Of a stretch of 64,000 bases of DNA, positions 941 through 27,300 are shown piece after piece. Position 1 is the first letter of the stretch, and each line of letters opens with the position of its first letter. The position numbers and the translations under genes are program-made. The notes beneath the pieces are model-generated. The model was not told the DNA's origin and did no database searches. It saw nothing but the letters and a program-made list of their open reading frames with translations. This stretch comes from Octopus sinensis. Its lineage: Eukaryota. The stretch spans positions 44,764,001-44,828,000 of the forward strand of contig NC_042997.1 of NCBI RefSeq assembly GCF_006345805.1, given 5' to 3'.

Positions 941-970
941 AGGAGTGGCTGTGTGGTAAGTAGCTTGCTT
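941..970 (+). mobile_element. 5' head (A-box part) of tRNA-derived SINE; target of the element stack
   Basis: aggagtggctgtgtggtaagtagcttgctt matches the start of the intact SINE at 53548 and then breaks into unrelated sequence at 971. Confidence 0.85.
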
Positions 971-3084
971 CCGCACATGCGCGTCAGGTCGACTTCTTGC
1001 CAGTGAACAGTGAGGACGTGAGCTTTGAGCTCCGTCCTAGAAAGAAAAAAGAACAAAAACAGAGAAGGTTGTCGAGGCAAGTGATTTTGTTTTATCTGAG
1101 TTGGGTGTAATTTGTTATATTGTAATTTTTTGTTAACAAATTTCGCCCATTGCTGGGACAATTTCGCCTGCTCTCGGAGGCTGCTGTTTTGTGAATTTAG
1201 TGTGAATTTTTTGGATTCATTTTAAAAAAACAGTGGAGGGGTGTATCCTCGGCCGAATGATTAGAACCTGTTACAGTTGCTGTTGCAGTTACCGTTGGCT
1301 GTGACCAGTTTTGTGTTTGGATTTATTGGAGTTCTTTTACCAATTACGGGAAAAAACGATTCATACCAAGGAACCTATATGCATTTGACCGGGAATACCT
1401 GTGGGCCAGGAAATTGGAGTTTTGCTGAGTGAATTGTTTTCCTTTTTTCCGTCTACCCTTCCTGTTTTGTTTTAACTGTTTAATTATTTTTTGGACTTTA
1501 TTATATTTTTTGCTGTTTCTGTTAACTTTTGTGTACCAGTTTTGGACTTATTCTGTGACCTTTGAACTTTCTTTGAACTTTCAAGACTTTCTTTTTTGCA
1601 CATGGCAAAAATAAACGGTGTCGCTGCTTTGGAGTGGGAGGTGGTCCCACCCAAACAGTGGATTAAAGATCTTGAGAAGAGGACGGTGGTGCTACGGACC
1701 TATTCTAGGTCGCGTGGTGCCATCACCCTCTTCGACAAGAGCATAAATGAGAGAGAGAGTTGGCAGACTACCTGCCAACTATAAAATTTATTTCACGGGG
1801 GACCAAATTTGCAACGGTCTGGTTGCTGTTTGGTACCCCCGAGGAAGCTGGCAAATTTGCCAGCGAGCCCCTTGAGGGGAATGAAATTTTGTTCTCCCCC
1901 ACGTATTGTGGGAGGAAGATAAGAATAGCCTGGGTATGCGGGCTGCCCCCGGGCACGGAAGCGGGATGGATCGAAGATACCATCCGGCGAGGCCTGGGGG
2001 ATAGCAGGCCCGGGCTATTGAGGGTGGATGTTGCTCCTGCGGTCGACTGGGAGGGGTCAAAGGCAACTTTGACCCTGTGGACCCCGGTGGCCGTGGGAGT
2101 ATTTGACATTCCCAGACTTCCTAAATATGGCCGGGGACAGGTACCCGGTGATATTTGAGCCCCCCCCCCAAGTGTCACCTGTGCCTGGAGCCTGGCCATA
2201 TCAGGAAGAACTGTACCAAGGCCCTGAAAAGGAGAAAGTGCCCGCCGCCCCTTCATTGGAGGGGGAGAAGGTGGAAGTTTTCTCCACGAAAAGAAAAAGA
2301 AAGGTGGGCAACAATGGTTGCTCACCAAAGAATGTACAGGCCGCGGAGGAGAGTAGCGACCCCCTGCGTCTGTCGACGTAGCCCCCTGCTTCCGCAGCCA
2401 CAAAAAGAAAGAGGAAAAAGAGGAGTAGAGGACGGTCGGTGGATGTTCCTGGGCCGCCGACGGAGCCGCAGGTGGGATAGGGCTCCGTCAGTGGGAAGTG
2501 TGCCACTGACGGAGCAGTGTGAGGTTCCTTCCTGTGACGAGGAGGTGTTTGTCCTCCTTTACCACGAGAGAGGGACGGTGAGTAAGTTTTTGGACGGCTT
2601 GGGTGGCTGAGAACGTGTGTACTCGGTCTGCCCAAGTAGTCCGATATGGCCTCCGCTGGTGGCTACGGAGGTAGTAACGGAAAACATTTTGTCAAAGGTC
2701 ACAGCGACCTTTGACAAGAAAGAATTTGCTTTCCTCTTTGCAGGCTCCGACTTGTCGTTGCAGAGTTGTCTGCAGGCGGCAAGTCACATTGCTTGGGGGA
2801 CCTGACAAGGAGAATTGTTGTAAATCTATGTGCTGCCCTTGTGGCAAATTAAATGAAATAAAGTAGCTTGTAAGAGGTTTTAGTGCCTCCTTCTTGTAAG
2901 AGGTTTGAAACCTCATATTGATTTTTAAAAAAGAAAATATGTTTTCGAGAAAAATCCAATCGGCGGATGTCGGGTTTCGTCTCTCCTTTATTCATTTTAA
3001 TTCATTTTCATTCATTAATGTGTTTGTCTAGCCCGCAAAGCTACACAATCGTTGTACTGTCTATATGACAAATTTTATGAAACA
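971..3084 (+). mobile_element. ORF1-only L1/Tx1-like retroelement, copy A
   Basis: Bounded by aagtagcttgctt at 958-970 and 3085-3097; colinear with copy D (5'UTR, ORF1, 3'UTR ending aattttatgaaacaaa); no APE or RT sequence. Confidence 0.8.
1602..2805 (+). pseudogene. Frameshifted gag-like ORF1 of copy A (RRM-like region, CCHC knuckle, basic tail, C-terminal HIAW domain)
   Basis: Joined frames read MAKINGVAALEWEVVPPKQW...FATVWLLFGTPEEAGKFASEP...CHLCLEPGHIRKNC (C-X2-C-X4-H-X4-C)...KRKRK...SHIAWGT*. Confidence 0.75.
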
Positions 3085-3097: not shown

Positions 3098-4546
3098 CCG
3101 GTTACCCATAGTGCATTTAGTTTGTCGTTTGTGTGCGAGTCGGACGTCGGTTTTGTTGCTACGGTAAGACAATGTACTCAGACCTTAGCGGGTCTGAGTT
3201 GTCTTCAGAGGAGGAGCTCGTGAGGGCGGTCATAGCGATGGACAGTGTGCTAGAAATGTCCAGGAGTTTTACAAAGGCCACGGAGAAGAAACGAAGGGAG
3301 TTGGACTTGGCTGGTCTGAAAAATTATGACAAGATGTTACAGAAGGTGGGAGGGGACGTAAGGCTGTCGCCCCCCAAAGGAATTATGGAGAAGATGGAAA
3401 GGAAAACTATCACCTATAATATGTTCTCTTTAAAAGGAAAAAAGGTTGAGCAGGTGGAAGCGGATACAGAAAAGGCGCTAAGAGAGAAGTCTAAAGAGAT
3501 TACATATATCACAAAAGGAAAAAGATATGGCACAATGGTCGTCCAATTTAGGACAGCTGAAGAGGCAATGAGGCTGGCGAGTGTGGCGGTAAAAACGGAG
3601 GAGGTAGTGCTTCTGCCCACATACTTGGGAAGAAAAACTTCTAAGGTGAGGGTAGAAGCAATTCCACCGGATGTATAAGTGGCTTGGGTAGCGGCAGCTG
3701 TCCTTGTGGGAAGCGAGGAGGAGGTGGCTGTCCTCCAAGCCACAGAAAGAGAAGAAGGAGGGTGGAAAGGAATGACGCTCGAGTTAATTTTTCAGACGGA
3801 GGAGGGACAACTCGAGAACTTGGCAAAGACTGTGACGCTGGGGAAATCGTGCTGAGGGTGTGGGTAGAGGGCAGAGTACCACGTTGTTTTAAATGTGGCC
3901 AAACGGGCCACATTAGAGCATACTGCCCTCTACGAAGGACTATGGCTGAGGATATAGTTGCGGAGACAGAAGAGAAAAGAGAGGAAGACAAAATAGACGG
4001 AGGAAACGATAAAAAGGAGGAAGAATGGAAAATTGCAGAGCGCAAAAGGAGAAAGAGGAAAAAAAAGAAAAGACACTGAGTATGATGTGGCACCCCAGTC
4101 CAACCCCATACCACTCAGACCCACCCTCCCCATACAGACATCAAACCCACCCACCCCATTTCCCCTCAAGAAAAAAAGAAAAAGAAAGAAAATACACCAC
4201 AAAATTTAGAAGAACCCACCCTCCCGGTGAAAAAGGTTATGAATGCATGACGGAAAGAATGTTATCTTTAAGTGACAGGGAAAAGGGAAAAAAGGATTGG
4301 ACGAAAAGAGAAAAAGGACTCAGGACCCAGAGACAGCGAGTGGTGTTACTCAGTGTGGGGTGAGTAGCACACTCTTCATAATATCATTTTCAGATATCAT
4401 TCATATTATCATATTTTAATTTATTCTTCATGTGCATTTTCATGTTCATTCATTATATCATATTCTATTTCTTAATTGTTATATGTCCCCACATGTGTTG
4501 TAGTGTCCCCTCTGTGTATTGCCTTTATGGCAAATTTAATAAAATA
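3098..4546 (+). mobile_element. ORF1-only L1/Tx1-like retroelement, copy B (divergent ORF1 lineage)
   Basis: Lies between aagtagcttgctt (3085-3097) and aagtggcttgctt (4547-4559); ends ggcaaatttaataaaataaa; contains no ORF2. Confidence 0.75.
3172..4363 (+). pseudogene. Disrupted gag-like ORF1 of copy B
   Basis: MYSDLSGSELSSEEE...LLPTYLGRKTSKVRVEAIPPDV*...VWVEGRVPRCFKCGQTGHIRAYCP...KRKKKKRH; one in-frame stop and frameshifts; the 3' limit is approximate. Confidence 0.7.
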
Positions 4547-4559: not shown

Positions 4560-5348
4560 ACGCGCATGCGTGTTTGTTCGTTGCTTATTGGATTGAACAC
4601 TGTCAAGACCGTTGGTGGCCGTCTTGAATCGAAGAACTGTTGAAGAGGCGCGACTGCAAGGTAGGCACTTGCTTTTTTTTTTAGGGATTCGGTGGGGATT
4701 TTGTTGCTTGACATTGTTTTTCTTTTTTCAAATGAGAAAGTCTTCATTGGGTCTCGAAAATTTGTCGGCTGCAGCCACGCTCAAGTAACTCACTAACCGG
4801 TGCGAATTGTTTTTTTTTGGTGAGCGTGTCTCACTACCAAAATTTGAAAAGTTTATAAAAATTCGACCCATCCGTGGAAGAATGTGGTTTTTTTTTGTTT
4901 TTTTTTTTTTGCTGCTACAATAAACTGGAGTACCAGTGTGAAGCAATATTCTGGAGGATTACCTGTGGACCCGGATTATCTAAGTGGTGGAATTGTGTTG
5001 CCGTGCTGGAACTGTTTTCCTTCGTTCTTTTCTCTGCTCTGTCTTTTTGTTCTTTCTTTGTGTTTCTTTGGACTTTTATTTGAATATTTTGAACTTTTTT
5101 CTTGAACATTTTCCTGTTTTTGTTTTTTTAAAAAGCATGGCAAAAAATAAAAACACTGTCTTTGAGGGGGAAATTGTGCCTCCCAGGCAGTGGGTAAAGG
5201 ACCTTAATGAGAGAGCGGTGGTGTTGAGGACATATTCCAAGTCCCTCGACACCATCACTGTGTTCTCTCAAGTACATATTGAGAAGGAGTTGGCAGAATA
5301 CCTGCCAACCATCAAGTTTATTGCAAGGGGTGTCAAATAGGCAACTGT
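4560..5348 (+). mobile_element. ORF1-only-type element copy C, 5' part (interrupted)
   Basis: Starts acgcgcatgcg like copy D; ORF1 from ATG 5137 (MAKNKNTVFEGEIVPPRQW...YLPTIKFIARGVK); the continuation WLLFDTPEEARIFA resumes at ~5782. Confidence 0.75.
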
Positions 5349-8321: not shown

Positions 8322-8409
8322 TATGTATAACCCTATTGATATGCTCTTTGGCTTGTCACCTCTCTTTTCTCTTTCTTAATGCCTGTTTACAACGCCATGC
8401 ATAATCCTT

Positions 8410-8590
8410 TCTACTTTAGGCTCACGGTCTGAAATTCGTGGAGAGGGAGGTACTCGGTTACATCGATCCCAGTATTCAACTGGTACTTATTTTATCGAGC
8501 CCGAAATCAATGAAAGACAAAGTTGGCGACGGTTCCATTTGAACTCAGAACGTAGAGAGCCGGAAGAGATGCCGCTAAGCCTTTTGTCCG
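8410..8590 (-). mobile_element. Degenerate tRNA-derived SINE (second family)
   Basis: Reverse complement resembles 63256-63480 (ttctgagttcaaat B-box, gataaaataagtaccagtt core). Confidence 0.6.
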
Positions 8591-9199
8591 TGCAGCAATG
8601 TTATTTAATCACTAAAAATAGCTTACATTTAAAAAATGATTTTCAATCTATCGTTTGCCTTTCGTTACTTCAAACATATTTACGATCTCATGGGTATTGA
8701 AATTCTTCTAATTCCATTATGAATTGTACTTCCACAGGTATACAAACATCAGTTTATTCATCTGAATCAACATTTCTTCTCAGGGGATTTTCCTATTTCT
8801 CACAAATACTCGAAATGGGGTGTTGAACTACTCTTCTTTCCTGCAAGCCACCCCCCACTTCCTGTTGAACAGAGAGAAAAAGAAGATGAAGAGTGTCATA
8901 GTAACCAATTACTTGCTATCGTGAGCAGAGTGTGTGAGTATTTGGATGAAAGTGAGACAGTTGACACCTCTCCCAAAGTCTTATTATTCGCTATGTAAAA
9001 ATGAGAACTTGGTTTCTATTCTACAAAACCGAACTGATGGACTTAGAAGTAATTAATTATCAAGTAATTAACTGATTCTTTACGCAGGAACCAGGTCACG
9101 CATTTCTGGACAGGGTACAGACGTTTTTAAACTGGCTCCAATATTAGAAATATACGTTCTTCTTTCAAGTATTATTGTTTTTCATCTATACTGTATGCT

Positions 9200-9470
9200 C
9201 GTTGAAGGAGTGCCGCCAAATGTGACTTTTGCCGACATGGCCAGACTCACGAGATCATTGGAAGTGATGTCCAGTTTAAAATTCTAGAGGATGGACGCTT
9301 TTGGGGATACTGCAAGTAGTGTTAGAGCACCAAAGTGTTTCAGTTCGGAGAGAGAGGTTTAGTGAATGGTAAGACACAACAAAGGGGATGAGCTGAGGAG
9401 TCCCAGTTCATTCGGGTTGATCGGAGAGGAGGTAGTACACTGCTTATTTGGTTGTAGGACTAGTACCTGG
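9200..9470 (-). mobile_element. Possible degenerate L2/CR1-type 3' fragment
   Basis: Weak resemblance on the minus strand to an ORF2 C-terminal RT..LW motif; heavily decayed. Confidence 0.3.
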
Positions 9471-9529
9471 AGAAGAGACAAAAAAAAAAAAAGAAAAAGA
9501 AAAGGAAACTGTGGCTGTATGTTTCGTCT

Positions 9530-9872
9530 ACACTCACCTCTTTATGAGAGCTCAAAATCTCTCGTGGAAGCGCCATCCAACCAAAATGCAAATATATGGG
9601 AAACTACCACCTGTGTCATCTCTTGTGAAAGATAAGAGAGTCCAGTTTGCTGGACATTGTTGTAGAGCTGAAAAAGAGGTAATTTCTACTCTTCTCCTCT
9701 GGAAGCCATCTACGCGCAATACCAGAGGGCGCACACTCTCCTACCCTGATGTAATCTCCAGGGATACAGGCATCCAGCAACAGGACCTCCGTAATGCCAT
9801 GATGGACCGTGAAGTCTGGCGTAGCATGGTAAATTCCATTGTCTCGACCACGGTCGAACAATGATGATGATG
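9530..9872 (+). mobile_element. RTE-clade LINE 3' end
   Basis: ...RVQFAGHCCRAEKEVISTLLLWKP...GRTLSYPDVISRD...AMMDREVWRSMV, followed by a (TGA)n tail. Confidence 0.8.
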
Positions 9873-10693
9873 TTTCGTCACTGGATAATAAATTTATTTT
9901 TTATTTGAATAAAAATAAAGTTAATACAAATAAGCCTCTTTTTGAACAGTTGAATTTTATTTCAATGGGAAAATAATGTTCCTTCTGTTAGAAAATTTGG
10001 AAAAGCCCGGAAATCAAACAATGTGTCTGTAGGGCTAGTAAGAGTTGATAAGTAAAAAAGTGAATCTTTGCTAAACAAGCGGTTTATATTAACAGTGGTA
10101 GAAACAATTACAGTAGCGATGGAAGCAAAGATGGAAAACAGTGTGTCTGTGGGCTTGCAGTTGCAGTGGTTAGAGTGAATTATTGTCAAGCAGGCGAACG
10201 ACAGCTTTTGATTTAGACGTAGCCTTAATCAGTTATATAGGCAGCAGCTGCTCTGCCTCAGACATGTGAACAGTACTTTAATACGGGTCACACCCAGGCT
10301 CCGTAGAGGGTCATCAGTTGTCTCGAACTGAAATGTTTTCTGACACTAAGATATCTAGCTGTACAGTTTTTAGCATGCTTACAGATTTGTCGTCGCCTTA
10401 AAATATTGCAAGAGCTGGTGAGCTCTAGTATTTGTAATGAGTTTGTAAATTTTAGTTGTGTTCTTCAATAGGGATGGTAAGGCTTGACAATGATTTTCTT
10501 TGATGAATAATGACTGTTTCCCGCTCATGAGTAACAAAATACAACGTTTCGTTTTCGACATTTAAAAATTTATTGATAATATCTAATAATAATAATTTTC
10601 TGAAAAAAAAGCACAAAGCCAACTATTTTTGGGTTGGTGATGTGGGAGGGAGGAACAAGTTGATACTTACGATCCATGTATTTAACAGGTACT

Positions 10694-11118
10694 CTCTTTT
10701 ACTCTTTTACTTGTTTCAGTCATTTGACTGCGGCCATGCTGGAGCACCGCCTTTAGTCGAGCAACTCGACCCCGGGACTTATTCTTTTGTAAGCCCAGTA
10801 CTTATTCTATCGGTCTCTTTTGTCGAACCGCTAATGAACGGGGACATAAACACACCAACATCGGTTGTCAAGCAATGCTAGGGGGACAAACACAGACACA
10901 CACACACAAACACACACACACACACACACACACACAGATATATATATACATATATACGACAGGCTTCTTTCAGTTTCCGTCTACCAAATCCACCCACAAG
11001 GCATTGGTCGGCCCGGGGCTATAGCAGAAGACACTTGCCCAAGGTGCCACGCAGTGGGACTGAACCCGGAACCATGTGGTTGGTAAGCAAGCTACTTACC
11101 ACACAGCCACTGCTGCGC
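10694..11118 (-). mobile_element. Full-length tRNA-derived SINE (empty target site)
   Basis: Reverse complement of the 53548 copy; uninterrupted ggtaagtagcttgcttaccaaccac; flanked by ~110-bp direct repeats. Confidence 0.9.
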
Positions 11119-12216
11119 CTAATAATAATAATTTTCTGAAAAAAAGCACAAAGCCAACTATTTTTGGGTTGGTGATGTGGGAGGGAGGAACAAGTTGATA
11201 CTTACGACCCATGTATTTAACAGGTACTTTATATTATCTATTGCATAATTGGGACTCAGAACACAAAGAGCCGGAGAAGTGCCGCAAGGCATTTAGTCCG
11301 ACTCTGTAACGATTCCGCCAGCTCAGTATCATATAATGATGATTGTGATATCTTAATTCGAACTATGAATTATTTCTTAAACCTAGTTATTTTTCTTTAT
11401 GCAGTTTGTGGAAGGAGTTTGATTTTGAGCTACAAATATCAACCCTTCCGTTACCTTCTTCAAAACGCCTTTTTATAGCCACTTCGCAGATTCAATACTT
11501 CTTATTTTTTCTCTGTCTATCTAACGTTTTGTTTCTCCACAATTTTCTTTCCCTCCTCATTTTTTTCATATCATCACTTATGGTTTACATACAGGCCTTC
11601 ATCTATTAATTTCTCATTGATTGTGCTAATATACGCGACTAGATTGTCTTCCTCACTCTCAACATATTCAGTTATGCTTTGTTGATCTCTGCCTCTTTCT
11701 TTCTCGGGGACATATATGAACTTTATATCACCCTGGGAGTGGTTATAAACCAGTTCATCGTTTAGTTTTTTCTTGTTTTCCTGTCCATTTTCTTTTCTTT
11801 TTTTAGCAACTTTTCTTTATATCTTCTTACTATACATGTACTGTACCTTACAAGTAACGTTGCCCATGAATTTATAACTATCATAGTGTTGTCTCCATTG
11901 GCTTTTTAGTATGTCTGTAGCATTCTTTTCGGCTGATATATTTCATGTCGTTATGAAGTATTTTATCTACTTCCCAGATAAAGAGGTATTTGTATGCTTT
12001 CATTCAACTCAATCACCTTGATAACTTCTCTGGAGGTCAACACCAATCTACCTCTCCTTGATACTTTCCCCACTTTTCAGTTTCAGATGACAATATCTCT
12101 TCAGTCTAAATTCTATTTTTTTGTTTCTTTTTTTTTTTATATTTGCAGTCTAGCATCGAAGCAATCGTCTGATGCTTTCTCCCCAAAATTGTGGAACTTG
12201 TGGCATAATTTGAAAC

Positions 12217-12271
<55 letters not shown>

Positions 12272-13937
12272 GCCTTTGCACAGCTTCCAACGTTGGAGAT
12301 GTACGACGGTGTCAGTCGTTCACTACCAGTGAACTAAGGTAACACCTCTTATTTTTCGAGCACCTTCCGGAGTATTCGAGCGGTTTCAAGCAGTACTGTT
12401 TTCTGCAAGTGCTCCACCCTTAATCAGCCCCTATTTGTTCCATGAATTTCTCAAGATTCTTGCTCACTGTTTCCAGAGCTCCGACAATTATTGGTACTAC
12501 TACCACCTTTTTCAGCGACCACAACTGCTTAACCTCCCAAGCTAACCTGATCTTTTGATTCAGTAGCCTTGAACTCCATCTGGTCCCGGGGCCTTCTAGT
12601 TGCTCATTTTTTTGCTGATTTCCTTCACTTCCCTAACTGAAATGACTAGTTCTGCCTGTTTTGGACAGACTATTGTTTGTTTCAGTTCTTGCAACCATTC
12701 AGCATCCTCCTTATGTTCCTTGTCTTTGCTTCAGATGTCACTCCAAAATCTCTGACTTTCGCTGTTATCTGGTATCAACTTTTCATCTGTACACTCTCCG
12801 TTTATTTCTTTGTAGAAACTCTTCTGATCTACTGTGAATAACCTATTCTGGTGGTAACCCTTCATTCTTTGGTCGTATCTTACCATCTCTGCTTTCTTTA
12901 CAACGAAGCGCTGTTTCAGTTCCTCCATTGCCACTTTCAGGCCCTTTCTTTCAATATTATACTTCCTTTTCAGCGCCCTATATTTTTGTTCGCTTTTAAT
13001 CTCCCCTTTCTCTTTTCGGTCTAACATAGAAATTTCCTTCGAATGCATATGTAACCCTGCCTGTATTCTTCTTTTCCACCCTGGATCTTTTCTATTGTCA
13101 CTCCCATTATGTTTCTTTTTCTTGACCTCGACACCCACGTTTTCTGCTACAACAATACTTGCTGCCTTGATCAAATTATTTGTTCTGTGATATTTTTTGT
13201 TCTGGTGTATTTCAGAATTTCTTTGACATTTATCGTTTCTTGGTTCAATTTCCATCGATCAGCCTTCTTAACTTTGGAAATAATGTCACTATCATTCTCC
13301 TGTAATCTTGCCTTTATTCTGTCATAGATTGCCTTTTGTTCATCTGTCATATCACCATTAGTTTTATTGTCTTCTTTTAGATCATCTATATGTCTCTCAT
13401 CAAGTAAACTACCACTTTCCTGTGCTATGAGATTACTTTTATTAGTAAGAACTGTATTTTCATCGTTATCTCTGCTGCTATTTTCCAAAACTCGTCTTTT
13501 GATAGCTTCGAGCTCTACTTCTGTGAACCAACAATTTTTCCTTATTGCTCTAGCTTGATCACATAGTCTCTGTTCCGTGAGTTGAGACAATCCCTTTTCT
13601 CTCCAATGATCATACACCATTGTCACTAACCCCTAATTTGAGCACCATATTCGTCTACCGGTTTGCTCAGATAGTAACACTCCATGACCACAGCATTAAT
13701 TTGCTTACTCCATCTACGCTGTGTGTAGAGGTCCCTTTTTGGATGTCGACAGGCTGGAGCCGGACCAGAATCTCTGAGCCTGCCGAGTGTAACACTGTCA
13801 CCATCAATGGCTTCAGTTTCATTACCACCGTTATTCACAATATTTCGTTTTTTCATTGTCACTCATATGAGGTAGCGATTATCAGGTTGCGCAATTATCA
13901 ATGTGTTTATTGTAACACCATCACTGGATGTATCATT
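12272..13937 (-). mobile_element. R4/Dong-like RLE non-LTR element with internal deletion, between (TAA)n tracts
   Basis: N-terminus RRWSKQINAVVMECYYLS...EQRLCDQARAIRK; KAPGPDGVQGY is joined directly to the C-terminal VVVVPIIVGAL...LQKTVLLETARILRKVL; 3' (AAT)n at 12219-12271. Confidence 0.8.
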
Positions 13938-13939
13938 AA

Positions 13940-13970
<31 letters not shown>

Positions 13971-14086
13971 TATTATTATTACTATTATTATTATTATTAT
14001 TATTATTGTTGTTATTATTATTATTATTACTATTATTATTATTATTATTTATTATTATTATTATACTATTATTATTATTATATTAC

Positions 14087-14125
<39 letters not shown>

Positions 14126-14134
14126 ATTATTATT

Positions 14135-14165
<31 letters not shown>

Positions 14166-14231
14166 TATTATTATTATTACTATATTATTATTATTTATTA
14201 TTATTATTATTATATTATTACTATTATTATA

Positions 14232-14270
<39 letters not shown>

Positions 14271-14460
14271 TATTATTATTATTTATTATTATTATTATTA
14301 TTATATATTATTATTATTATTATTATATATTATTATTATTACTATTATTATTATTATATTATTATTATTATTATATTATTATATTATTATATTACTATTA
14401 TTATTATTATTATTATTATTACTATTATTATTATTATATTATTATTACTATTATTATTAC

Positions 14461-14496
<36 letters not shown>

Positions 14497-14571
14497 TATT
14501 ATTATTATTATTATTACTATTATTATTACTATTATTATTATTATTATTATTATATTATTATTATTTATTAC

Positions 14572-14607
<36 letters not shown>

Positions 14608-14724
14608 TATTATTATTATACTATTATTATATTATTATTATTATTACTATTATTATTATTTTATTATTATTATTACTATTATTATTATTATTATTATTAC
14701 TATTATTATTATTATTATTATTAC

Positions 14725-14772
<48 letters not shown>

Positions 14773-14786
14773 TATTATTATTATTA
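13938..14786. repeat. Imperfect (ATT)n microsatellite, ~850 bp
   Basis: Direct reading; scattered ACT and slippage variants. Confidence 0.98.
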
Positions 14787-14935
14787 GGTGGCGAGCTGGC
14801 AGAATCGTTAGCACGCCGGGAAAAATGCTTTGCAGCATTTCGTCTGCCTTGACGTTCTGAGTTCAAATTCCGCCAAGATTGACTTTGCCTCTCATTCTTT
14901 CGAGATCGATAAACTAAGTACCAGTTACACAAGCG
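14787..14935 (+). mobile_element. tRNA-derived SINE (second family), 5' part
   Basis: ggtggcgagctggcagaatcgttagcacgccggg...ttctgagttcaaattccgcc. Confidence 0.8.
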
Positions 14936-15523
14936 CCGACTTGTTGATATCACACAATTAAACGGCAAACGAAAATGGCAATTATACACCTTACGCTTAA
15001 TAACTTGAAACGACTAACTGCGGACTAATTCAACTTAAATCATCCACAGGAGTGCACCTTTATAATAAATTACACCGTCCAAAAACGGGTGCATTTGCTA
15101 GTGTGTGTATATATAAACTTTGAATAGATTTACTGAGGTGATCCCTTTTTGCAACCATAGGTTTTCGTCCACCTTTTTGAAAGTGTATAGAAATAAAAGG
15201 AGATGTAATAAAATTGTTTAGTGTTACGGGGATTTGAAACCGGCGCGGTTAAATTTCTGCTAATATGAGTGTTTAGCAATAGACATTTTTTTCTCCAAAC
15301 TTTTAGAAAATTTGTACTGGTCTGCTGATGGGTTTTCTTTGAAATAATATAACATTTTCATAAAAATGTTTTACTCTGTGACATGCTACAGCAATTCTGA
15401 GTCCAGATTCGGAATCAGCGCACTCGATTTAGTTTATTACAGCACCATTTGTCTGGTAGCAGACAATAAAGTTTTTGTTGCCCAGTGTTATTTTTTCTGA
15501 TGCTCTACCGTTTCTACTATGAA

Positions 15524-15822
15524 GGCGCATGGTTCGGTGTTTAGGGCGTCGGACTCAAAATCATGAGTTTGTGTGTTCGATTTTTTGTTGTGTTTGTTGT
15601 GTTCTTGAGCAAGACACTTTATTTCACGTTGCTCCAGTTCACTCAGCTGTAGAAATGAGTTACGATGTCATCGGTGCCAAGCTGTATCGGCCCCTTTGCC
15701 TTTCCCTTGGATAACATCAGTAGCGTGGTGGGCGGAGACTGGTATGCATGGGCGACTGCTGGTCTTCCATGAACAACCTTGCTCGGACTTGTGCCTCGGA
15801 GGGGAACTTTCTAGGTGCAATC
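15524..15822 (+). mobile_element. tRNA-derived SINE (third family)
   Basis: aggcgcatgg...ttgagcaagacactttatttcacgttgctccagttcactcagctg...; an inverted, better preserved copy lies at 41294-41600. Confidence 0.75.
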
Positions 15823-15834
15823 CTATCCTGTTAC

Positions 15835-16190
15835 ACTTACTTGTTTCAGTTATTTGACTGTGGCCATGCTGGAGCACCGCCTTTAGTCGAACAAATCGAC
15901 CCTAGGACTTATTCTTTGTAAGCCTAGTACTTATTCTATCGTTCACTTTAGCCGGACCGTTAAGTTAGGGGCACGTAAACACACCAGCATCGGTTGTCAA
16001 GCGATGGTGGGGAGACAAACACAGACACACACACACACACATGGATATACAACGGACTTCTTTCAGTTTCCGTCTACCAAATCCACTCACAAGGCTTTGA
16101 TCGGCCCGAGGCTATAGCAGAAGACATTTGTCCAAGGTTCCACACAGTGAGACTGAACCCGGAACCATGTGGTTGGTAAACAAGCTACTT
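15835..16190 (-). mobile_element. 3' part of the SINE split by copy D (5' head at 18214-18243)
   Basis: Minus strand resumes aagtagcttgtttaccaaccacatggttccgggttcagtc...; joining it to 18214-18243 restores a complete SINE. Confidence 0.88.
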
Positions 16191-18213
16191 TATTTCATAA
16201 AATTGGCTATGCAGCCTTACAAAGATGTAGCTGCGGGTTGGACAAAGACACAAATGATAATGGAATGGAAAAAAATGGTTGGTGGGGGAAGCAGACAACG
16301 CCCACCGAATGCTGCTTCTCGAAAACATTGTTCTCTTTTTCTCAACAACACAAAATGAGGTATTGAACTTCTTACCACAGTTCAAAGAATGGACACAATC
16401 GTCCTTACAAGATGAGACGCTGAGCCTCTTACCAAAAAATAACAAATTCAAATCGAGGTACTAAGGCCTCTTACCTTTCCTCCTCGACCAGGCTATATGC
16501 CGCCCGCAGGCAATCCTGCAGTTCTCAGTCGGGGCTCCAAAAAGCAAAACTATATTGGTCCTTGGGAAAGGAGTCAAGGAGTCCATCACCCTGAACATAT
16601 CATTCTCCAAGTTACCTGCGGAAGCCAATCCGGGTCTTCAGTCCAGGACAGGATCCCCTCCGTCTCTCTAGCTTCACAAAGCTCTGTACAGCTCCTTCCT
16701 TATGAAAGATCACAAAATCATCCTTCGTTATAATGGGAGGGGCCACAGTTTCCTTCGTCGATGGCACAATTCCCACTGATGAGGTTTCAGGACATGCCGG
16801 CAGTGTACTACTAACCGCCGATAATGTCCCATTCTTCTTCTTCATTTTTCTCCATTGTGCTACGGGAGGGTGTAGTTCCTCTGCTTTATCCGGAGGATCT
16901 TCCCTCCTTCCCGCAGCCTTGAGGTTCTTCGGTAGGCAACCATTGTTTCCCACCTTCTTCCTTTTCCCCCCTTTTTTCGAGGAGGTCTCCACCTCTTCGA
17001 CTGCCTCCATCTCTCCCTTTAAAGGAGGGGGCACTACTTTTATTAACTGCTCCAGGACCCTACTTTGGGCCTGGGGACAGTTCTTCTTAATATGGCCCAG
17101 TTCCAGGCACAGGTGACACTTGGTGGGGAGGGGTGTCCCTTAAGTATCACTGGGTACCTGTAATCGGCCATTTTCATAAAATCTGGAAATACCAGATCTT
17201 TAGCGGCTGACTGGGTCCATAGGGTCAAAACCGCTTTTGACCCCACCCAATCAGCCGCCGGCAACAATTTCACAATTAAAAGCTTGGGCCCGCTGCCACC
17301 CAGACCCCGGCAGATAGTGTCTTCTATCCATTGCAGTTCAATGCCCGGTGGAAGCCCACAGACCCAAGCTCTTCATAATTTCTTCCCACAATATATGGGA
17401 AGAAACAGAATCTTTCGCCCTTCTTAGGGCTGGCTCGCAAATTTGCGAGCCACCTCAGGGGTGTCAAATAGCAACAACACCTTTGCATATCTAACAGCCT
17501 TGGAAATAAGCTTAATTAATCTTTTTCTATTTCTGTCTTAGGAAAGACCGCGATGGTGTCGAGTGACTTAGAATAAGTCCTCAACACCACAGTTCTTTCC
17601 TCTAAGTGTTTTAACCATTGCTTAGGTGGGATAATTTCCCACTCCAACGCAGTGTTCAATTTCTTCGCCATGCTTTGAGGAAAAAGTTCAGAAAAAAAAA
17701 ACAAACAACAGAAGTCCAAACAAAGTCAAAAAACATTTCGGAGGAAGACAAAGAAGAGAAAAAGAAAGAAGGAAGACAGTTCAAATCACGGCAACACACA
17801 ATTACAGCCAACCTGTACTCCTGGCCAACAGGTACTCCAAAAGGTATTCCAAAAGTGAACAGGGACACAGCAGCAGGAACACAACTTCAAAAAAATCCGC
17901 CATAAATAGGTAAAAATTCAGAAATTTTGCCAAATAAATTTCAAAATTTTTGTGGGCGGGATTCGCCCCCAAAACAACACAATTCTCACAATTAAGGGAG
18001 ACAGCGCAACTGTAAGCAGACAAATGTCCCGGAATCCAGTGGGTATTTCTTGTTCGAAAAAATAATGGACATCAAACAAAAAACCCCCACTGAATCCCCC
18101 AAAACAAACGTCCTACCTTACAGTTGCGTCTCAAAGTTCTTCAATTCTATACAGCTGCAAAGCAACGTCTTGACTACACCAGTGCTGTAGTAAACTAACT
18201 AACGCATGCGCGT
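16191..18213 (-). mobile_element. Complete ORF1-only L1/Tx1-like retroelement, copy D (2023 bp)
   Basis: Flanked by 13-bp TSD-like copies (18214-18226 and 16178-16190); 5'UTR, ORF1 and ~270-bp 3'UTR ending aattttatgaaataaa; no ORF2. Confidence 0.85.
16461..17671 (-). pseudogene. Disrupted gag-like ORF1 of copy D
   Basis: MAKKLNTALEWEIIPPKQW...LLFDTPEVARKFASQP...CHLCLELGHIKKNCP...KRKKVGNNGC...RHIAWSRRKGKRP*; homologous to copy A ORF1. Confidence 0.78.
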
Positions 18214-18331
18214 AAGCAAGCTGTTTACCACACAGCCACTCTTGCGCATATACTGTCTTTATATAGATTAAATGAGAAGAAATATACATGGTTGCGAGGA
18301 TTGTTAGATGAATCGTATACATAATGAAATA

Positions 18332-18540
18332 ACTCTTTTACTCTTTTACTCTTTTACTTGTTTCAGTCATTTGACTGCGGCCATGCTGGAGCACCGCCTT
18401 TAGTCGAGCAAATCGACTCCGGGACTTATTCTTTGTAAGCCCAGTACTTATTCTATCGGTCTCTTTTGCCGAACCGCTAAGTAACGGGGACATAAACACA
18501 CCAGCATCGGTTGTCAAGCAATGCTAGGGGACAAACACAG

Positions 18541-18605
<65 letters not shown>

Positions 18606-18762
18606 TACGACGGGCTTCTTTCAGTTTCCGTCTACCAAATCCACTCACAAGGCATTGGTCGGTCCGGGGCTATAGCAGAAGACACTTGCCCAAGATGCCA
18701 CGCAGTGGGACTGAAACCGGAACCATGTGGTTGGTTAGCAAGCTGCTTACCACACAGCCACT
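18332..18762 (-). mobile_element. Full-length tRNA-derived SINE (first family)
   Basis: Same family as 10694-11118; internal (TA)/(CA) microsatellite. Confidence 0.9.
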
Positions 18763-18857
18763 CCTCAGTCTTTACTCTTTTTTTTTCTACCGTTTCTACT
18801 AAGTCGCCAAACAAACTGGTATGAAGTTCAGCATAACGATGTAAAAGTCTTATGATG

Positions 18858-19095
18858 CAGGGTGTTGAAAAAGTCTCTCCGCAGTGAATTTTTTTCATCC
18901 TGCGCATCACATGGCGTTATTTCAAGAGTTTTCCGGTGAACGGTTTATTTGAAAGGGACTTTGGCCACCAAGATTACCTGATTTAAACACTACCAGCTTT
19001 TTTTTTTTTTTCTCTGGAGCAAGTAAAGGATCAGTGTACAAGGATACCCCGAAAGTATTAAATACTTACTGCGGAGAGACTTTTTGAACACCTTA
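18858..19095 (+). mobile_element. Deleted Tc1/mariner derivative
   Basis: TIRs cagggtgttgaaaaagtctctccgcagt / actgcggagagactttttgaacacctta|TA; internal WPPRLPDL (WPxxSPDL motif). Confidence 0.75.
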
Positions 19096-19332
19096 TATAA
19101 TCAAGCATCGTCTTTTTAACACCAAATCGGCCTTGATTGAGCAGACCGATTGTTATATTTTCATAAATGTGTGTATGAGTATGTATATGTGTGTATGTAT
19201 GTATGTATGTATGTATATATATATTCAGAAATATTTCTGATTTGGGTAATCAGTGAATAAACGTCACTGAAAATTAGATATATATATTTACGAAGTCGGG
19301 ACAGATATCTGCGGCTGGCGGGCTTCTGCTAC

Positions 19333-21380: not shown

Positions 21381-21631
21381 TATTCATTAAAATTTTAAAA
21401 TCATAACGTCTTATCATCCTGATCCTCGTATTGCAATTACAAGCACTGATGGACCGCCTCCCCTGTAAGACTTCCATTGTTTGTCCCCGACCCCTCCTTC
21501 TTATTATATCTATGTATGCCTGTCTGTCTGTTTGGTTTATTCATTCAACAAGTAAGGAATTAATTTTTGCTTTTGTTTGTTGTCCTTTAAAGGAATTTCT
21601 TTTTCTGCTTGTGGTTTCCGTAGTTCTGGAT

Positions 21632-21850
21632 CAGAACTACGACCCCACCTCCCCCTCCGGTTCGACTAGGAGACATGATTTTCTCATAACCGTTCAGGAG
21701 AGGTGTGAAAGCCTGCAACTAGTCCAACTTGGTCTCTGTAGCAGCCATCACATTTATTCTGTGTGACCTGAGGCCCTCGAGGTAACAAGCCTGCTTCCTC
21801 TTTGACCCCAAGCCAAGCACATTCAAACATCCGATCTTTAATGTAGCCAT
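21632..21850 (-). pseudogene. APE endonuclease N-terminus of ORF2
   Basis: With one frameshift reads MATLK-IGCLNVLGLGSKRKQACYLEGLRSHRINVMAATETKL...GGGVVVL, matching APE motifs (NV.GL, ETK, GV). Confidence 0.7.
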
Positions 21851-23640
21851 GTCAGTTGAAGAAGGAAAAAAAACGCTGAGCTTACCTTTCTCATTTTTCT
21901 CGGTTTTATACTAGAGGAGGAAAGTCCTTAGTACCACCCGCACTAACCCCTCCTCCTCCTTCCTCTCATACAGGAATGGTTCTATCCTGGATTTAAAATT
22001 TTCGGCAGGTCCTTCATTTCCACAATGTGTCCTCTATGTCTTTCTTTTCATTCAAGATACAAGCTTTGTGGCAGTTTGGCTACCGTATCTATGTTTTTAA
22101 TATTATTTTTATATATCTTCGTTTGACGATGGGGCTCATCTAAATATTTATTTTGTGTTTTGTATACGACTATCGTAAGATCCTCCTTCTTGAATAGTTT
22201 TATCGTGCTTAGTCCCATGGTTTCTTTTTTAGGGCTTCCTATAGGTTTTTCCGTAGTTTTTACCATTTTCATTTTTGGAGTCGACGCCATTTTCTGACGG
22301 CATTTACGTGTCACCGTTTGGAAGTCCATTTCTTCTTCTGATAGTATCACAGTAGTTTTTTCTTTTCCTCCGGCATTTCGCTGGTATTAGAGGAGGTGGA
22401 CACCCGATGTGTAACCGCCTCCTTGGCGGGGGCGTCTGCATCTTCACGGTCACCCCTTTTGTAATTGCCTCCTTGGCTGGGGGTGCCGTAATATTGATGT
22501 TTGCCGATGCCCTCTTCGTAACAGCCTCCTTAGCTAGGGGCGCCGGTGCTCCTTTTTCCTAGGGGTTTGCCGACGCCTTCTGCGTAACAGCCTCCTTGGC
22601 TGGAGGTGCCGGCGTTTCTTTTTCCTTCGAAGAGATGGTTGCTTTCTGTGTAATAGCCTCCTTGGCTTGGGGTACCATCTCTTCTTTATCTTCCTCATCC
22701 TTGTTCTTAGGGCATTTTGACATAATGTGCCCTTTCTTGTCACATTTAAAACATCGTGGTCTTCTCCCCTCAACATTTACAGGTAATATAGTCCCCTCCC
22801 CGATATGAATGGTTTCGGGGAGGTTTTCTAAGACTTCGAATGAAGCCTGGGCCAGAATCTCCAGAGTTTGACCCCACCAGTTTTGCGTGGCATCCCTGGA
22901 AACCTGGATGATATTTATTTTTTCCTCCCTGCCGAAAAGGATGGAGACGGCTATCCACGCCGCTTCCACCTCTGGAGGAATATTTTAAATTTTCATTCGG
23001 ACCGTCCTTCTACCTAGATACAGCGACAAAAACAGTATATTTCCACTTTGCACGGTTCGAGTCGAGAAGTCTCTAGCCTTCTCGGCTTCTATTGTCGCAA
23101 ACCTTGTGCCTCTGGCCAGGTATTTGATTTCGTTTAACGCCAGCCAGAGGCATTTTTCGATTGCTGATTCTTCTAAATGTACGAATCTTTTTTTTTTCCC
23201 CAGGATTGAAGACTTTATAAATTATAGTCTTTTCTTTGGTTCTAGTTATCATTTCCCCAGGCGCCGTCAGTTTGCTTTGTCCTTCGGTTTCTGTAATTAG
23301 TCCGAAATACTGTTGTATTTCTTTTTTTTTTATTCAATTTTTTCCCCTTCGCCTACAGCGACGGCAAAATTCAACTTCTTTGGCTGTTCGACCAAAGCCA
23401 TTTCACAATAATAATAATTTCACAGAAAAATATACGAGAATAGAAAAATAGTCTTCCGCGAGGAATGCAGTTAAACAAGTTACACAAAAATTTTTCTACA
23501 CTTCCTCCAAGGGAGAGGACAACAAAAATTATTCACAATAGAATAATAAATCAACGTTTCCCTACGGAAACCACAAACAGAAAAACAAATTCCTTTGAAA
23601 GATGACACACAGACAGACACTGAGTGAACAGACAGGCAAG
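21632..23640 (-). mobile_element. L1/Tx1-like element E with ORF1 and the start of ORF2 (3'-truncated)
   Basis: ORF1 23401-22048 is homologous to copy B (EGRRPRCFKCDKKGHIMSKCP); ORF2 starts at 21850. Confidence 0.78.
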
Positions 23641-24029
23641 AGTGATTTCTTTATTTGCCTATTCAAGACAAACGTAGAGAGGACAAACAATGACAGACTA
23701 GACACCACAAGTGGGGACAAAAACATAAACAGGTGAATGAAAGATGACGATGAAATGTCCACTCGGCCCGACCTCCGAGCAGTACCGTTATCAACTATAT
23801 TTTACCTCTGTTTTAAAACTTACGTTTATCAAAATAGATATCTTAATAAATGAAATGTGTTTTTAATTTTCAAGTTCTACCTCAGGATGGTAGATAGTCG
23901 TACCCAACGGGTTTACTTCGTCACCGAAGCTTGCCTATTGCCTATTCAAGGCATATACATAGGGGAAAAAACAAAGACATACAAGACATCCCCAGAGGGG
24001 ACCAAAATTATAAACGGATGAATAAAATT
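23641..24029 (-). mobile_element. Two short Tx1-like 3'-end fragments
   Basis: Both end ...ttgaataggcaa(ataaagaaatcact) on the minus strand (23645-23790 and 23935-24029). Confidence 0.5.
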
Positions 24030-24120
24030 AACTATATTTGCCTCTATTTTTAAGCTTACGTTTATCACAATAGATATCTTAATAGATAAAATGTGATTCT
24101 AATTTTTCATTTTCTAGCAC

Positions 24121-24300
24121 CTGATCACCATCCACGTAGCGTCGGAAGTACCTCAGCCTCAACGCATGCTTGCGCATCATTGGCCAAGGCAACGCCAGTC
24201 CTCCCTTTAACGGTTTCTGGCAGCAGATGGAGCACCCCACAAGTGGTGGCTTCCCCTTCCACAAAAAGCGGAAAAAGATCCGTTCTAACTTGGTCAGTCA
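24121..24300 (-). pseudogene. L1/Tx1 ORF2 post-RT fragment
   Basis: [38 protein letters not shown] fits the L1-clade FLW.G...GGL.LP motif. Confidence 0.75.
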
Positions 24301-27300
24301 TCCACCGATCCATACACCCATCCATCCATCCATCCATCCATCCACCCACCCATCCACCCACCCATCCATCCATCCATCCACCCATTCATCCATCCACACA
24401 CCAATCCATCCATCCAACCATCCATCCATCCATCCACCCATCCATCCATCCACCCATCAATCCATCAATCCATCCATCCATCCACCCATCCATCCACCCA
24501 TCCACCAATCCATCCATCCATCCATCCACCAATCCATCCACCCATCCTACAATCCAGCCATCCATCAATCCATCCATCCATCAATCCATCCATCCTCCAT
24601 CCATCCACCCATCCATCCACCCATCAATCCACCCATCAATCCACCCATCCATCCATCCATCCACCCATCCAACCATCCATCCATCCATTCACCCATCCAT
24701 TCATCAATCCATCCACCCATCCATCTATCCATCCATCCATTCACCCAACCATTAATCCATCCATCCACCCATCCATGGACGGATAGGTGGATGGATGAAT
24801 GGATGGATGGGTGGATGGATGGATGGATGGATGGATGGGTGGATTGATGGGTGGATCATCGATGGGTGGGGGATGGATGGAGGGATAGGTGGATGGATGG
24901 ATGGATGGTGGATGGATGGATGGGTGGAGGGGTGGAGGGATGGATGGGTGGATGGATGGATTGATGGGTGGATGAATGGAGGGATGTATGGATGGATGGA
25001 TCGGTGGATGGATGGATGGATGGATGGATGAATGGATGGATGGATGGGTGGATGGATGGACGTGTGGATGTATGGATGGATGGATGAATGGATGGGTGGA
25101 TGGATGGTTGAATGGATGGGTGGATGGATGGATGGATAGATGGATTGATTGATGGATGGATGGATAGATGGATGGATGGGTGGATGGATGGATGGGTGGA
25201 TGGATGGATGGATGGATTGATGAATGGATGGGTGGATGCCTGGATGGAGGGATCGATGGGTGGATGGATGGATTGGTGGATTGACGGTGGATGGATGGAT
25301 GGGTCGATGTATGGATGGATGGGTGGATGGATAGATGGATTGTTGGATGGGTGGATGTATGGATGGATTGATGGGTGGATCATGGATGGGTGGGTGGATA
25401 GATGGAGGGATAGGTTGATGGATGGATGGATGGGTGGAGGGATGGATGAATGGATGGATGGATGGATGGATTGATGGGTGGATGGATGGATGGATGGTTG
25501 GATGGATGGATGGATTTATGGATTGGTGGATGGATGGATGGGTGGAGGATAGATGGGTGGATCCATCCATCCATACATCTACCCATCCATTCATCCATTC
25601 ATCCATACATCCACCCATCCATTCATCCGTCCATACATCCACACATCCATCCATCCATCCATCCATCCACCCATCCAACCATTCATCCATCCACCCATCC
25701 ATCCATCCATACATCCATTCATCTATCCATCCATCCATCCATCTGTCCATCCATCCACCCATCCATCCATCCACCAATCCACCCATTAATCCATCCATCC
25801 ACCCATCTATCCATCCATACATCTACCCATCCATCCTTCCAACAATCCATCCATCCATCCATCCATCCACCCACCCATCCATTCATCCATCCACCCATCC
25901 GTTCATCCATCAATCCACCCATCCATTCAACCATCGATCGATCCACCCATCCATCCATCCACCCATCCACCCATCCATTCATCCTTCCACCCATCCATCC
26001 ATCCACCATCCACCGATCCATTCATCCTTCCACCCATCCATCCATTCATCCATCCATCCATCCTTCCACCCATCCATCCACCCATCCATCCACCCATCCA
26101 TCCACCCATCCATCGATCCACCCATCCATTCATCCATCCATCCACCCATCCATTCATCCATCCACCCATCCATTCATCCATCCATCCATCCATTCATCCA
26201 TCCATACATCCACACGTCCATCCATCCACCCATCCATCTATCCATGCATCCATCCGACCATCCATGATCCATCCATCCATCAATCCACCCATCCATCCAT
26301 CCATCTACCCATCCACCCATCCATCCACCCAGCCATCCATCCATCTACACATCCATCCATTCATCCATCCACCCATCCATCCATCCACCATCCATCCATC
26401 CACCCACCCATCCACCCATCCATTCATCCATCCATCCATCCACCCATCCATTCATCCATCCATCCACCCATCCACACGTCCATCCATCCACCCATCCATC
26501 CATTCATCCATCCATCAATCCATCCACCCATCCATCCATTCATCCATCCACCCATCCATCTATCCATCCATCCATACATCTATCCATCCACCCATCCATC
26601 CATCCACCAATCCACTCATTAATCCATCCATCCACCCATCCACCAATCCATCCATCCATCCACACATCCATCCATCCATCCATCCATCCATCCACCCATC
26701 CACCAATCCATCCATCCATCCATCCATCCACCAATCCATCCACCCATCCTACAATCCAGCCATCCATCAATCCATCCATCCATCAATCCATCCATCCTCC
26801 ATCCATCCACCCATCCATCCACCCTACCATCCATCCATCCATCCACCCATCCATCCACCCATCAATCCACCCATCAATCCACCCATCCATCCATCCATCC
26901 ACCCATCCACCCATCCATCCATCCATTCACCCATCCTTTCATCAATCCATCCACCCATCCATCCATTCACCCACCCATTAATCCATCCATCCACCCATCC
27001 ATGGATGGATAGGTGGATGGATGAATGGATGGATGGGTGGATGGATGGATGGATGGATGGATGGGTGGATTGATGGGTGAATCATCGATGGGTGGGGGAT
27101 GGATGGAGGAATAGGTGGATGGATGGATGGGTGGAGGGATGGATGGATGGATGGGTGGATGGATGGATGGATTGATGGGTGGATGAATGGAGGGATGTAT
27201 GGATGGATGGATGGGTGGATGGATGGATGGATGGGTGGATGGATGGACGTGTGGATGTATGGATGGATGAATGGATGGGTGGATGGATGGATGGATGGGT

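Follow-up and report, generated by a model that had tools for sequence, protein, structure and literature searches.

What is the 2023-bp insert that interrupts a short interspersed element (SINE) in a 64,000-nucleotide stretch of Octopus sinensis contig NC_042997.1 (positions 44,764,001 to 44,828,000; hereafter the window), and how could it have come to lie there? The insert, named element F, occupies 16191..18213 on the minus strand, with its 5' end at 18213 and its 3' end at 16191. It is a decayed retroelement of the kind without long terminal repeats (non-LTR) and carries a first open reading frame (ORF1) only. The likely answer, in our judgement, is that F represents an old copy, now dead, of an ORF1-only, non-autonomous element that derives from a target-specific octopod long interspersed element (LINE) of the L1/Tx1 type.

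Element F interrupts a SINE that was there before it, and a copy of the duplicated target lies on either side. Excision of 16191-18213 in silico joins a SINE head (18214-~18250) to a SINE body (15830-16190), as a reading of this DNA made from its letters alone (the sequence-only reading) had claimed, and both rejoined parts align with four intact copies in the window. The head upstream of the insertion, delimited by alignment with intact copies (18227..18250, minus strand), ends in ..GAGTGGCTGTGTGGT and is box-A-like; the remainder of the host (15830..16177, minus strand) starts with the box-B-like ACCAACCACATGGTTCCGGGTTCAGTC.. and continues into (GT)n and the SINE body. The unoccupied site in the four intact SINEs reads GTGGCTGTGTGGT AAGTAGCTTGCT(T/A) ACCAACC. 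Around F, the 5' copy of the target-site duplication (TSD) is AAACAGCTTGCTT (18226-18214, minus strand) and the 3' copy is AAGTAGCTTGTTT (16190-16178, minus strand), the first AA of which may instead be the end of the element. Because these two A residues fit either the tail or the duplication, the TSD measures 13 bp, the length first proposed, or 11 bp if they are assigned to the ..ATAAA element end. The two copies mismatch at 3/13 positions, and the insertion of F is therefore old. F, its host SINE, and the TSD are all on the minus strand, which corrects an earlier note. Box-like motifs (TGGCTGTGTGG and GGTTCCGGGTTCAGTCC) are visible by eye in the SINE head, and the insertion falls between the box-A-like and the box-B-like motif, in agreement with the proposal that it parts an A-box from a B-box. 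The accompanying description of the SINE as tRNA-derived stands less firmly: it rests on these eye-read motifs, since ARAGORN calls no tRNA in the SINE head and Rfam gives no tRNA match at E<=1. The Rfam matches that the head does produce (SCARNA7 and a CRISPR repeat) were set aside as chance or low-complexity.

The anatomy of F is that of a LINE lacking its second ORF. F is full length at its 5' end, where its terminus, ACGCGCATGCG, agrees with those of other copies. A 5' untranslated region (UTR) of 542 nt (17672..18213) precedes the ORF1 remnant (16612..17671), which has its start at 17671, its TAA stop at 16614-16612, and a CCHC zinc knuckle, KCHLCLELGHIKKNC, at 17121-17077. The 3' region (16191..16611) is without ORF2 and contains a hairpin, GGCT-gcat-AGCC, at 16205..16216, ~15 nt from the element end; all these features are on the minus strand. 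The 3' end reads ..ATGAAATAAA (also given as ..CCAATTTTATGAAATA at 16191) and has no A-run. A tblastn search with related ORF2 found no ORF2 remnant at E<1e-3 in F or in the window elements A and B introduced below, 3' regions included. The sequence-only reading was thus right about the knuckle, the terminal AATAAA, and an insert devoid of endonuclease and reverse transcriptase (RT), but not about one open gag-like frame: the F frame needs two frameshifts (~17519 and ~17121) and holds two in-frame stops (17426-17424 and 17375-17373). The ORF1 of F is a pseudogene, and this copy is dead.

The ORF is a LINE ORF1, composed of two domains resembling RNA-recognition motifs (RRMs) and a CCHC knuckle; it is identified as such because the genomic context places its homologues upstream of an ORF2 with an AP-type (APE) endonuclease, an RT, and a zf-RVT domain. 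The closest protein to the F ORF1 is O. sinensis LOC115225585 (P0001, 70% identity). Octopus transposable-element proteins are rarely annotated; the first homologue search returned P0001 alone. A profile built from the window ORF1 copies and P0001 found 721 relatives, the named ones coming from O. vulgaris, O. bimaculoides, O. sinensis, and Argonauta hians; homologues are essentially octopod-wide. Pfam reports zf-CCHC alone and no L1-type ORF1 domain; zf-CCHC exceeds the cut-off in three relatives (P0059, P0105, P0006) and falls below it in the conceptual F ORF1, which matches nothing else. No endonuclease or RT domain was detected by Pfam in ten long ORF1 relatives. One relative fused to WD40 repeats (P0102) was taken as a gene-model artefact.

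When P0001 was modelled with AlphaFold, using 64 relatives aligned to it (predicted local distance difference test, pLDDT, 82), the model contained two beta-alpha-beta-beta-alpha-beta units and then the knuckle. The best fold matches of this model in the Protein Data Bank (PDB) are tandem-RRM proteins (SFPQ/NONO, IMP3 RRM12, and hnRNP A1 UP1; E ~4e-5), at low TM-scores of 0.20-0.27 on the query, which we put down to the orientation of the predicted domains. When the ORF1 profile was compared with PDB sequences, the knuckle matched retroviral nucleocapsid knuckles, the remaining matches were low-complexity proteins only, and no solved ORF1 protein (ORF1p) was found. A 'type I' class of LINE ORF1 proteins, RRM plus CCHC, is reportedly due to Khazina and Weichenrieder in 2009. 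The octopus protein resembles this class in its predicted RRM folds followed by a knuckle, the latter corroborated by zf-CCHC in relatives, and differs from it in having no sequence-level match to a solved ORF1p, the knuckle alone matching PDB sequences.

Full-length relatives connect this ORF1 to an ORF2. In O. vulgaris OX597840.1 (locus L003), an ORF1 homologue lies just upstream of, and slightly overlaps, an ORF2 of 1132 residues with the domains Exo_endo_phos, RVT_1, and zf-RVT. Positions 4440-19300 of this locus contain three or more full-length LINEs of 5.3 kb each, almost identical and arranged head to tail, with junctions at which ..AAATAAAATAAAA meets CACTGATAAGGACGTTACTTTGAC; because the first copy has an intact ORF2, the family may be active. 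A mixed chain in O. sinensis CM016867.1 (L009, 480-16850) consists of an ORF1-only element, E, and then three full-length LINEs that differ from one another (ORF2 identity to the O. vulgaris ORF2 68%, 89%, and 95%); such a mixture argues for repeated insertion rather than tandem duplication. Related ORF2 matches human L1 ORF2p over residues 3-867, from the endonuclease through RT and thumb (E 2.5e-71), and matches R2 proteins in the RT region only (~1e-24), which places the relatives, as judged from these alignments, in the L1/Tx1 superfamily. The earlier 'Tx1' label holds at this superfamily level. One distant ORF2 match carries the automatic name 'Transposon TX1', and the repeat annotation of O. 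vulgaris lists 80 L1-Tx1 and 60 L1 families (PMC13282606). The combination of APE endonuclease, RT, and C-terminal zinc-binding domain with a separate ORF1 was seen in the full-length relatives only.

Is the ORF1-only form of F an accident or an architecture? Our sample comprises the 64-kb window and ~160 kb of loci chosen for encoding ORF1, and copy numbers or ratios of ORF1-only to full-length elements drawn from it are no estimates. Six complete elements without ORF2 keep the 5' UTR, ORF1, and tail. The first is F. The second, A (971..2863, plus strand; ATG at 1602), is an F-type element with a decayed ORF1 sharing about 61% amino-acid identity with that of F. The third, B (3098..4546, plus strand), has the same target and tail and belongs to a distant lineage, its ORF1 being 23% identical to the F-type P0001. 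The others are E in locus L009, H in O. sinensis CM016880.1 (L007, 7437-9074), and M in O. vulgaris OX597833.1 (L013, 8937-10647); M has an intact ORF1 of 379 residues (P0028), a 10-bp TSD (GCTGGGTTCG), and a tail hairpin, AGGC-cttgt-GCCT. ORF1-only is a recurrent architecture rather than an accident.

The clearest case is a single deletion structure shared by B, E, and H. In all three, the ORF1 stop is followed by an AGGTAAG(C/T)GATG block, which holds the ORF2 start codon in full-length relatives, then by a few codons, by ..GGGGTG(A/G)GTA(G/A)CA..CTTTCATA.TTCATTTTC, and by the 3' UTR. The three elements occupy three different targets in two species. B lies in a SINE head of the same family as the host of F. 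H lies in the head of a second SINE family, where ..GGCAGAAACGTTAGCACGCCG adjoins its 5' end and AGAAATGTTAGCACGCCGGGCG its 3' end; comparison with 16 intact copies of this SINE gives an 18-bp TSD, AGAAA(C/T)GTTAGCACGCCG. The junction motif of this second family is AGAAACGTTAGCACGCCG, and five of its intact copies are in the window (14801, 36732, 44287, 57191, and 63270). E has a 16-bp TSD at GGATGTGATATAATGA and adjoins full-length LINEs.

Selection has left its mark on the retained ORF. Pairwise Nei-Gojobori ratios of nonsynonymous to synonymous divergence (dN/dS) among the ORF1s of F, A, a further window element named C, and the copy in O. sinensis locus L001 are 0.15-0.24, at dS values of 0.56-1.6. 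The value below 1 that the sequence-only reading had asked for is therefore found, and ORF1 evolved under purifying selection. ORF1 is the conserved part of the elements, whose 5' UTRs diverge or are replaced. With ORF1 kept, ORF2 (endonuclease and RT) absent, and the LINE 3' end retained, the elements are built like HAL1, the ORF1-only derivative of mammalian L1. Propagation as a family is indicated, on a small and biased sample, by F, A, and a truncated F-type copy named mini, by B, E, and H, by M, and by the dN/dS values.

The alternative that survives best is that the ORF1-only copies are sporadic deletion products of a full-length SINE-specific LINE, dead on arrival or shortened after insertion, which never propagated as an ORF1-only RNA. 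Several observations are compatible with it: the sequence after the ORF1 stop differs in length between F (421 nt) and A (~250 nt), the F-type copies have all decayed, and the copies in L001 and L010, a second O. sinensis locus, are cut off after ORF1. Set against these is the precision of the loss. Both complete F-type copies, together with B, E, H, and M, lack exactly ORF2 and keep the 5' UTR, ORF1, and tail; B, E, and H share one deletion structure despite three targets and two species; the 5'-truncated mini already has the 3' UTR of an F-type ORF1-only element; and the ORF1 of M is intact. We regard independent deletions as unlikely.

The 3' ends bear on how the elements are copied. F, A, mini, and B have their last ~45 nt in common as a conserved block, which resembles the tails of the full-length relatives (..GCCCTTGTGGCAAATTAAATGAAATAAA in A versus ..GCCCCTTGTGGGTAAATAAAATAAAA in L003). 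A 4-bp hairpin lies ~15-20 nt from the end, and its stems vary while pairing is kept (TGCC/GGCA, TGTC/GACA, GCCC/GGGT, and GCCT/AGGC); the F stem GGCT/AGCC, as read by eye, is one column out of register with the stem that was scored. Across 12 tails, 91.7% of cells are paired, versus 68% in shuffles, none of 500 of which comes up to that figure; double changes are seen at each of the four pairs, and slid controls give 19-48%. A 3' terminal block with a covarying 4-bp hairpin thus appears to be shared by ORF1-only and full-length elements, and we take it as supporting evidence rather than proof because the hairpin was proposed by eye on the sequences that were then scored. A poly(A) run is absent from the 3' end of all copies seen, and because AATAAA is terminal, transcripts probably extend into the downstream target copy.

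Such read-through invites a second alternative, in which the target is picked by the element RNA and not by the endonuclease of a donor: the copy of the target at the 3' end of the transcript would anneal to SINE heads and guide priming. The ..ATAAA ends, with their terminal polyadenylation signal, abut the target directly and without poly(A), co-transcribed flanks could explain how one ORF1-only lineage reached three targets, and co-transcription with the target can strengthen target-specific integration (Kojima, PMC4494074). A nick would still be required, however, and the TSDs are regularly staggered (10-18 bp), which speaks for a sequence-specific endonuclease; the full-length relatives are themselves target-specific. 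We rate it as improbable, marginally more so than the deletions considered above.

Specificity itself is best seen at the junctions. The motif (AA)GTAGCTTGCTT is abutted by six element 5' ends and four element 3' ends, all in SINE orientation; the 5' ends come after ..GCTT, and the 3' ends read ..A(T/C)AAA followed directly by GT(A/G)GCTTG. Within the sample reached, further copies therefore lie at the same SINE position, as the sequence-only reading had anticipated. Four SINEs with unrelated upstream flanks are occupied: two in the window (the host of F and the head at 941) and two in O. sinensis loci reached via annotated ORF1 proteins. The 5' junctions of the latter join ..GGCTGTGTGGTAAGTAGCTTGCTT to CCTGTGCATGCG in L001 and ..GCCGTGTGGTAAGAAGTTTGCTT to CCACTGCGCATGTGCG in L010. 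The head at 941..970 (plus strand; last 13 nt AAGTAGCTTGCTT) opens a 4.4-kb head-to-tail chain (941-5340) in which A is followed by GTAGCTTG, mini, AAGTAGCTTGCTT, B, AAGTGGCTTGCTT, and C. Mini (2872..3084, plus strand) is a 3' UTR only, set between GTAGCTTG and AAGTAGCTTGCTT, and C (4560..5340, plus strand) consists of an F-type 5' UTR and the first 67 ORF1 codons, after which it is interrupted. A chain with the motif flanking every member is the outcome that would be expected from repeated insertion into a regenerated target. 5' truncation is a hallmark of target-primed reverse transcription, and 5'-truncated copies with intact 3' ends are found here (mini and 3' UTR-only copies of a further type, D), alongside TSDs of 11-13 bp (F), 16 bp (E), 18 bp (H), and 10 bp (M) and insertion into a specific target sequence.

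The copies that occupy the same nucleotide in the same orientation are independent of one another and come from two or more ORF1 lineages that differ greatly. Because this junction recurs in four SINE copies with unrelated upstream flanks, chance is excluded; neither chance recurrence nor the copying of one composite locus is tenable. The latter explanation, in which a segmental duplication or a SINE-plus-insert unit moving whole would replace independent insertions, could draw on the fact that both SINE halves are seen for F only, the other cases being SINE heads or internal chain junctions. We consider it very improbable: besides the unrelated flanks, the inserts either differ by 26-31% in nucleotides or come from a separate ORF1 lineage, every chain member is bordered by the 13-bp motif, and another SINE family contains a comparable insertion with flanking TSDs. 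That F reached the SINE by chance and is a host gene or the retrocopy of one, for instance for a domesticated gag-like protein that binds RNA, is hardly credible at all, even though NCBI and UniProt name its relatives 'uncharacterized protein' or 'CCHC-type domain-containing protein', given the many diverged copies, TSDs, fixed target, chains, 5' truncation, synteny with ORF2 in full-length LINEs, and the broken F copy.

The derivation of F from a target-specific L1/Tx1-type LINE, which we favour, suggests the following cycle. A full-length 2-kb RNA with a fixed 5' end would be made from an internal promoter, which is proposed because the full-length copies all start at a GCGCATGCG-like motif, and ORF1p encoded by this RNA would coat it in cis. 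The 3' hairpin and tail would then be recognised by ORF2p that a related full-length LINE provides in trans. The donor APE endonuclease would nick the SINE head at ..GGT^AAGTAGC, with a second nick 11-13 bp downstream after GCTT^ACC, and, with no poly(A) tail involved, priming of reverse transcription would take place at the ..ATAAA end. Every insertion would regenerate the target on both sides, allowing re-insertion and hence chains, and, by falling between the box-A-like and box-B-like motifs, should inactivate the SINE copy that receives it. The presence of the B, E, and H lineage at three targets may be read as the use of ORF2 donors with different specificities.

Several points weigh against this interpretation. 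First, no full-length LINE with the SINE target (..ATAAA directly before GTAGCTTGCTT) is present among the window and the loci examined, and an ORF2 donor for this target is postulated for that reason. The full-length partner that the sequence-only reading had called for is therefore found in part: relatives with an APE, RT, and zf-RVT ORF2 share the 3' tail and hairpin, but none found uses the SINE target. Second, placement reaches the level of the L1/Tx1 superfamily. Third, the sample is small and selected for ORF1, and the hairpin is subject to the circularity described above. Fourth, every F-type copy is damaged; P0001 is open yet lacks the first knuckle Cys and ends early. Fifth, given the unequal lengths after their ORF1 stops, F and A may differ in their deletion end points, a single ancestral deletion being shown for B, E, and H only. 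Sixth, full-length ancestors could account for some of the purifying selection.

Palindromic 5' ends were noted at F-type full-length starts, which are GCGCATGCG-like (ACGCGCATGCG, CCGCACATGCGCG, CCTGTGCATGCG, and CCACTGCGCATGTGCG), look like a site of the NRF1 type, and may form part of an internal promoter; they lie at 18213-18199, 971-985, and 4560-4574 of the window, 9488-9505 of L001, and 13739-13760 of L010. After the interrupted C, a chimera on the plus strand (5780-6040 and 6034-~7200) with three tandem ~102-bp units joins part of an ORF1 (..WLLFDTPEEARIF..) to the beginning of a decayed RT (HGFRPGRSC .. YADD).

Other LINE sequences surround these elements. D (21600..23640, minus strand) is a relative that keeps the ORF2 start (ATG at 21850, ..IGCLNVLGLGS), has a different target, and forms a chain of its own. 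This second chain (21600-24300, minus strand) contains an ORF2 fragment joined to a 3' UTR, a 3'-UTR-only copy, and a 5' UTR with ORF1 and the first ~80 codons of ORF2; its tails read ..GCCTTGAATAGGCAAATAAAGAAATCACT, and a (GGATGGAT)n-like satellite (24300-24600) adjoins the ORF2 fragment. C-terminal ORF2 ends of other, unrelated LINE families lie on the plus strand at 59-352 and 9448-9864 (..RVAEAWNKLP.. and ..RVQFAGHCCRAEKE..MMDREVWRSMV..). Distant ORF1 relatives also occur on three short Logan contigs (L002, L011, and L012, from SRR11869391 / SRR11869384), which are apparently octopod, judging from a SINE-head fragment in L011. One of them, L002, has ORF1 and then the start of ORF2 (..CLNVKGLRS), and L011 begins with a tail (CCCCTAGTGGGTAATAAAGAAATC) joined directly to the 5' UTR of the next element and ends in the SINE-head fragment. 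As partners, the ORF2 relatives P0158 and P0159 (L004 and L005) were rejected as marine-metagenome contigs without the octopus SINE target or the common tail, and P0157 (L006) was rejected on a contig cut off before the 3' end.

Three known systems frame the comparison. HAL1 ('half-L1') of mammals is described in PMC5753468 (after Smit 1999 and Bao & Jurka 2010) as an ORF1-only L1 derivative that arose more than once. It resembles the octopus elements in being non-autonomous, in keeping the 5' UTR, ORF1, and 3' end without ORF2, and in having to use ORF2p in trans; it differs in its L1-type ORF1, as opposed to two RRM-like domains and a CCHC knuckle, and in being A-tailed and without a specific target, whereas the octopus elements use one exact target and have no A-tail. 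HAL1 proper is ruled out for the octopus elements by the zf-CCHC-only Pfam result, the tandem RRM fold, and the octopod host. Tx1-clade LINEs target other transposons: Tx1L inserts into Tx1D (piggyBac), the target of Tx1-Mar is Mariner-N4_AMi, and further ones use LTR elements (Kojima 2015, PMC4494074). Shared with these are orientation- and position-specific insertion into a mobile element, tandem head-to-tail arrays, and, in the octopus relatives, an L1-like APE, RT, and zf-RVT ORF2, the comparison being at superfamily level. The known Tx1 elements, however, are autonomous and carry ORF2, whereas the octopus elements are ORF1-only and target a SINE head. Finally, SINEU-3 is a non-autonomous retroposon with the same Mariner-N4_AMi target as its presumed donor, Tx1-Mar (PMC4494074). 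It inherits the target specificity of a Tx1-type donor, as is proposed for the octopus elements, but SINEU has no ORF and an snRNA-derived head, whereas the octopus elements encode and conserve an ORF1p. The image of a parasite on a parasite, offered for F at the outset, fits an insertion into a SINE; given the Tx1 and SINEU-3 precedents, neither this nor a non-autonomous element inheriting a target is new.

Element F therefore joins two known ideas, a HAL1-like ORF1-only LINE and a Tx1-like exact target, and is not a new principle. In the literature searched, we found no description of a target-specific lineage that includes an ORF1-only form, of a LINE aimed at a SINE head, or of a single ORF1-only lineage spread across several targets. 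The octopus consensus sequences may already be in octopus repeat libraries as 'LINE/L1-Tx1'. For annotation, the elements account for ORF1 remnants now listed as 'uncharacterized' or 'CCHC-type domain-containing' octopus proteins.

A broader picture, which we hold to be possible though a little short of even, is that octopods harbour a long-lived and diversifying guild of ORF1-only LINE derivatives with ORF1p under selection. Several target-specific donors of the L1/Tx1 type would redirect one lineage to different 'safe' sites, two of which would be the heads of two SINE families, between box-A-like and box-B-like motifs. If this is true, the cis-function of ORF1p, the use of ORF2p in trans, and the inheritance of target specificity would become separately testable in one natural system, and the range of targets known for site-specific LINEs would come to include SINE heads. 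Should the family be active, or have been so recently, it would offer natural tests of whether ORF1p is needed in cis when ORF2p acts in trans, of how a non-autonomous element inherits or switches target specificity, and of how head-to-tail LINE chains originate. In O. vulgaris, SINEs account for ~12% of the genome (supplement of PMC13282606), and specific disruption of SINE promoters by such an element could therefore matter for SINE dynamics.

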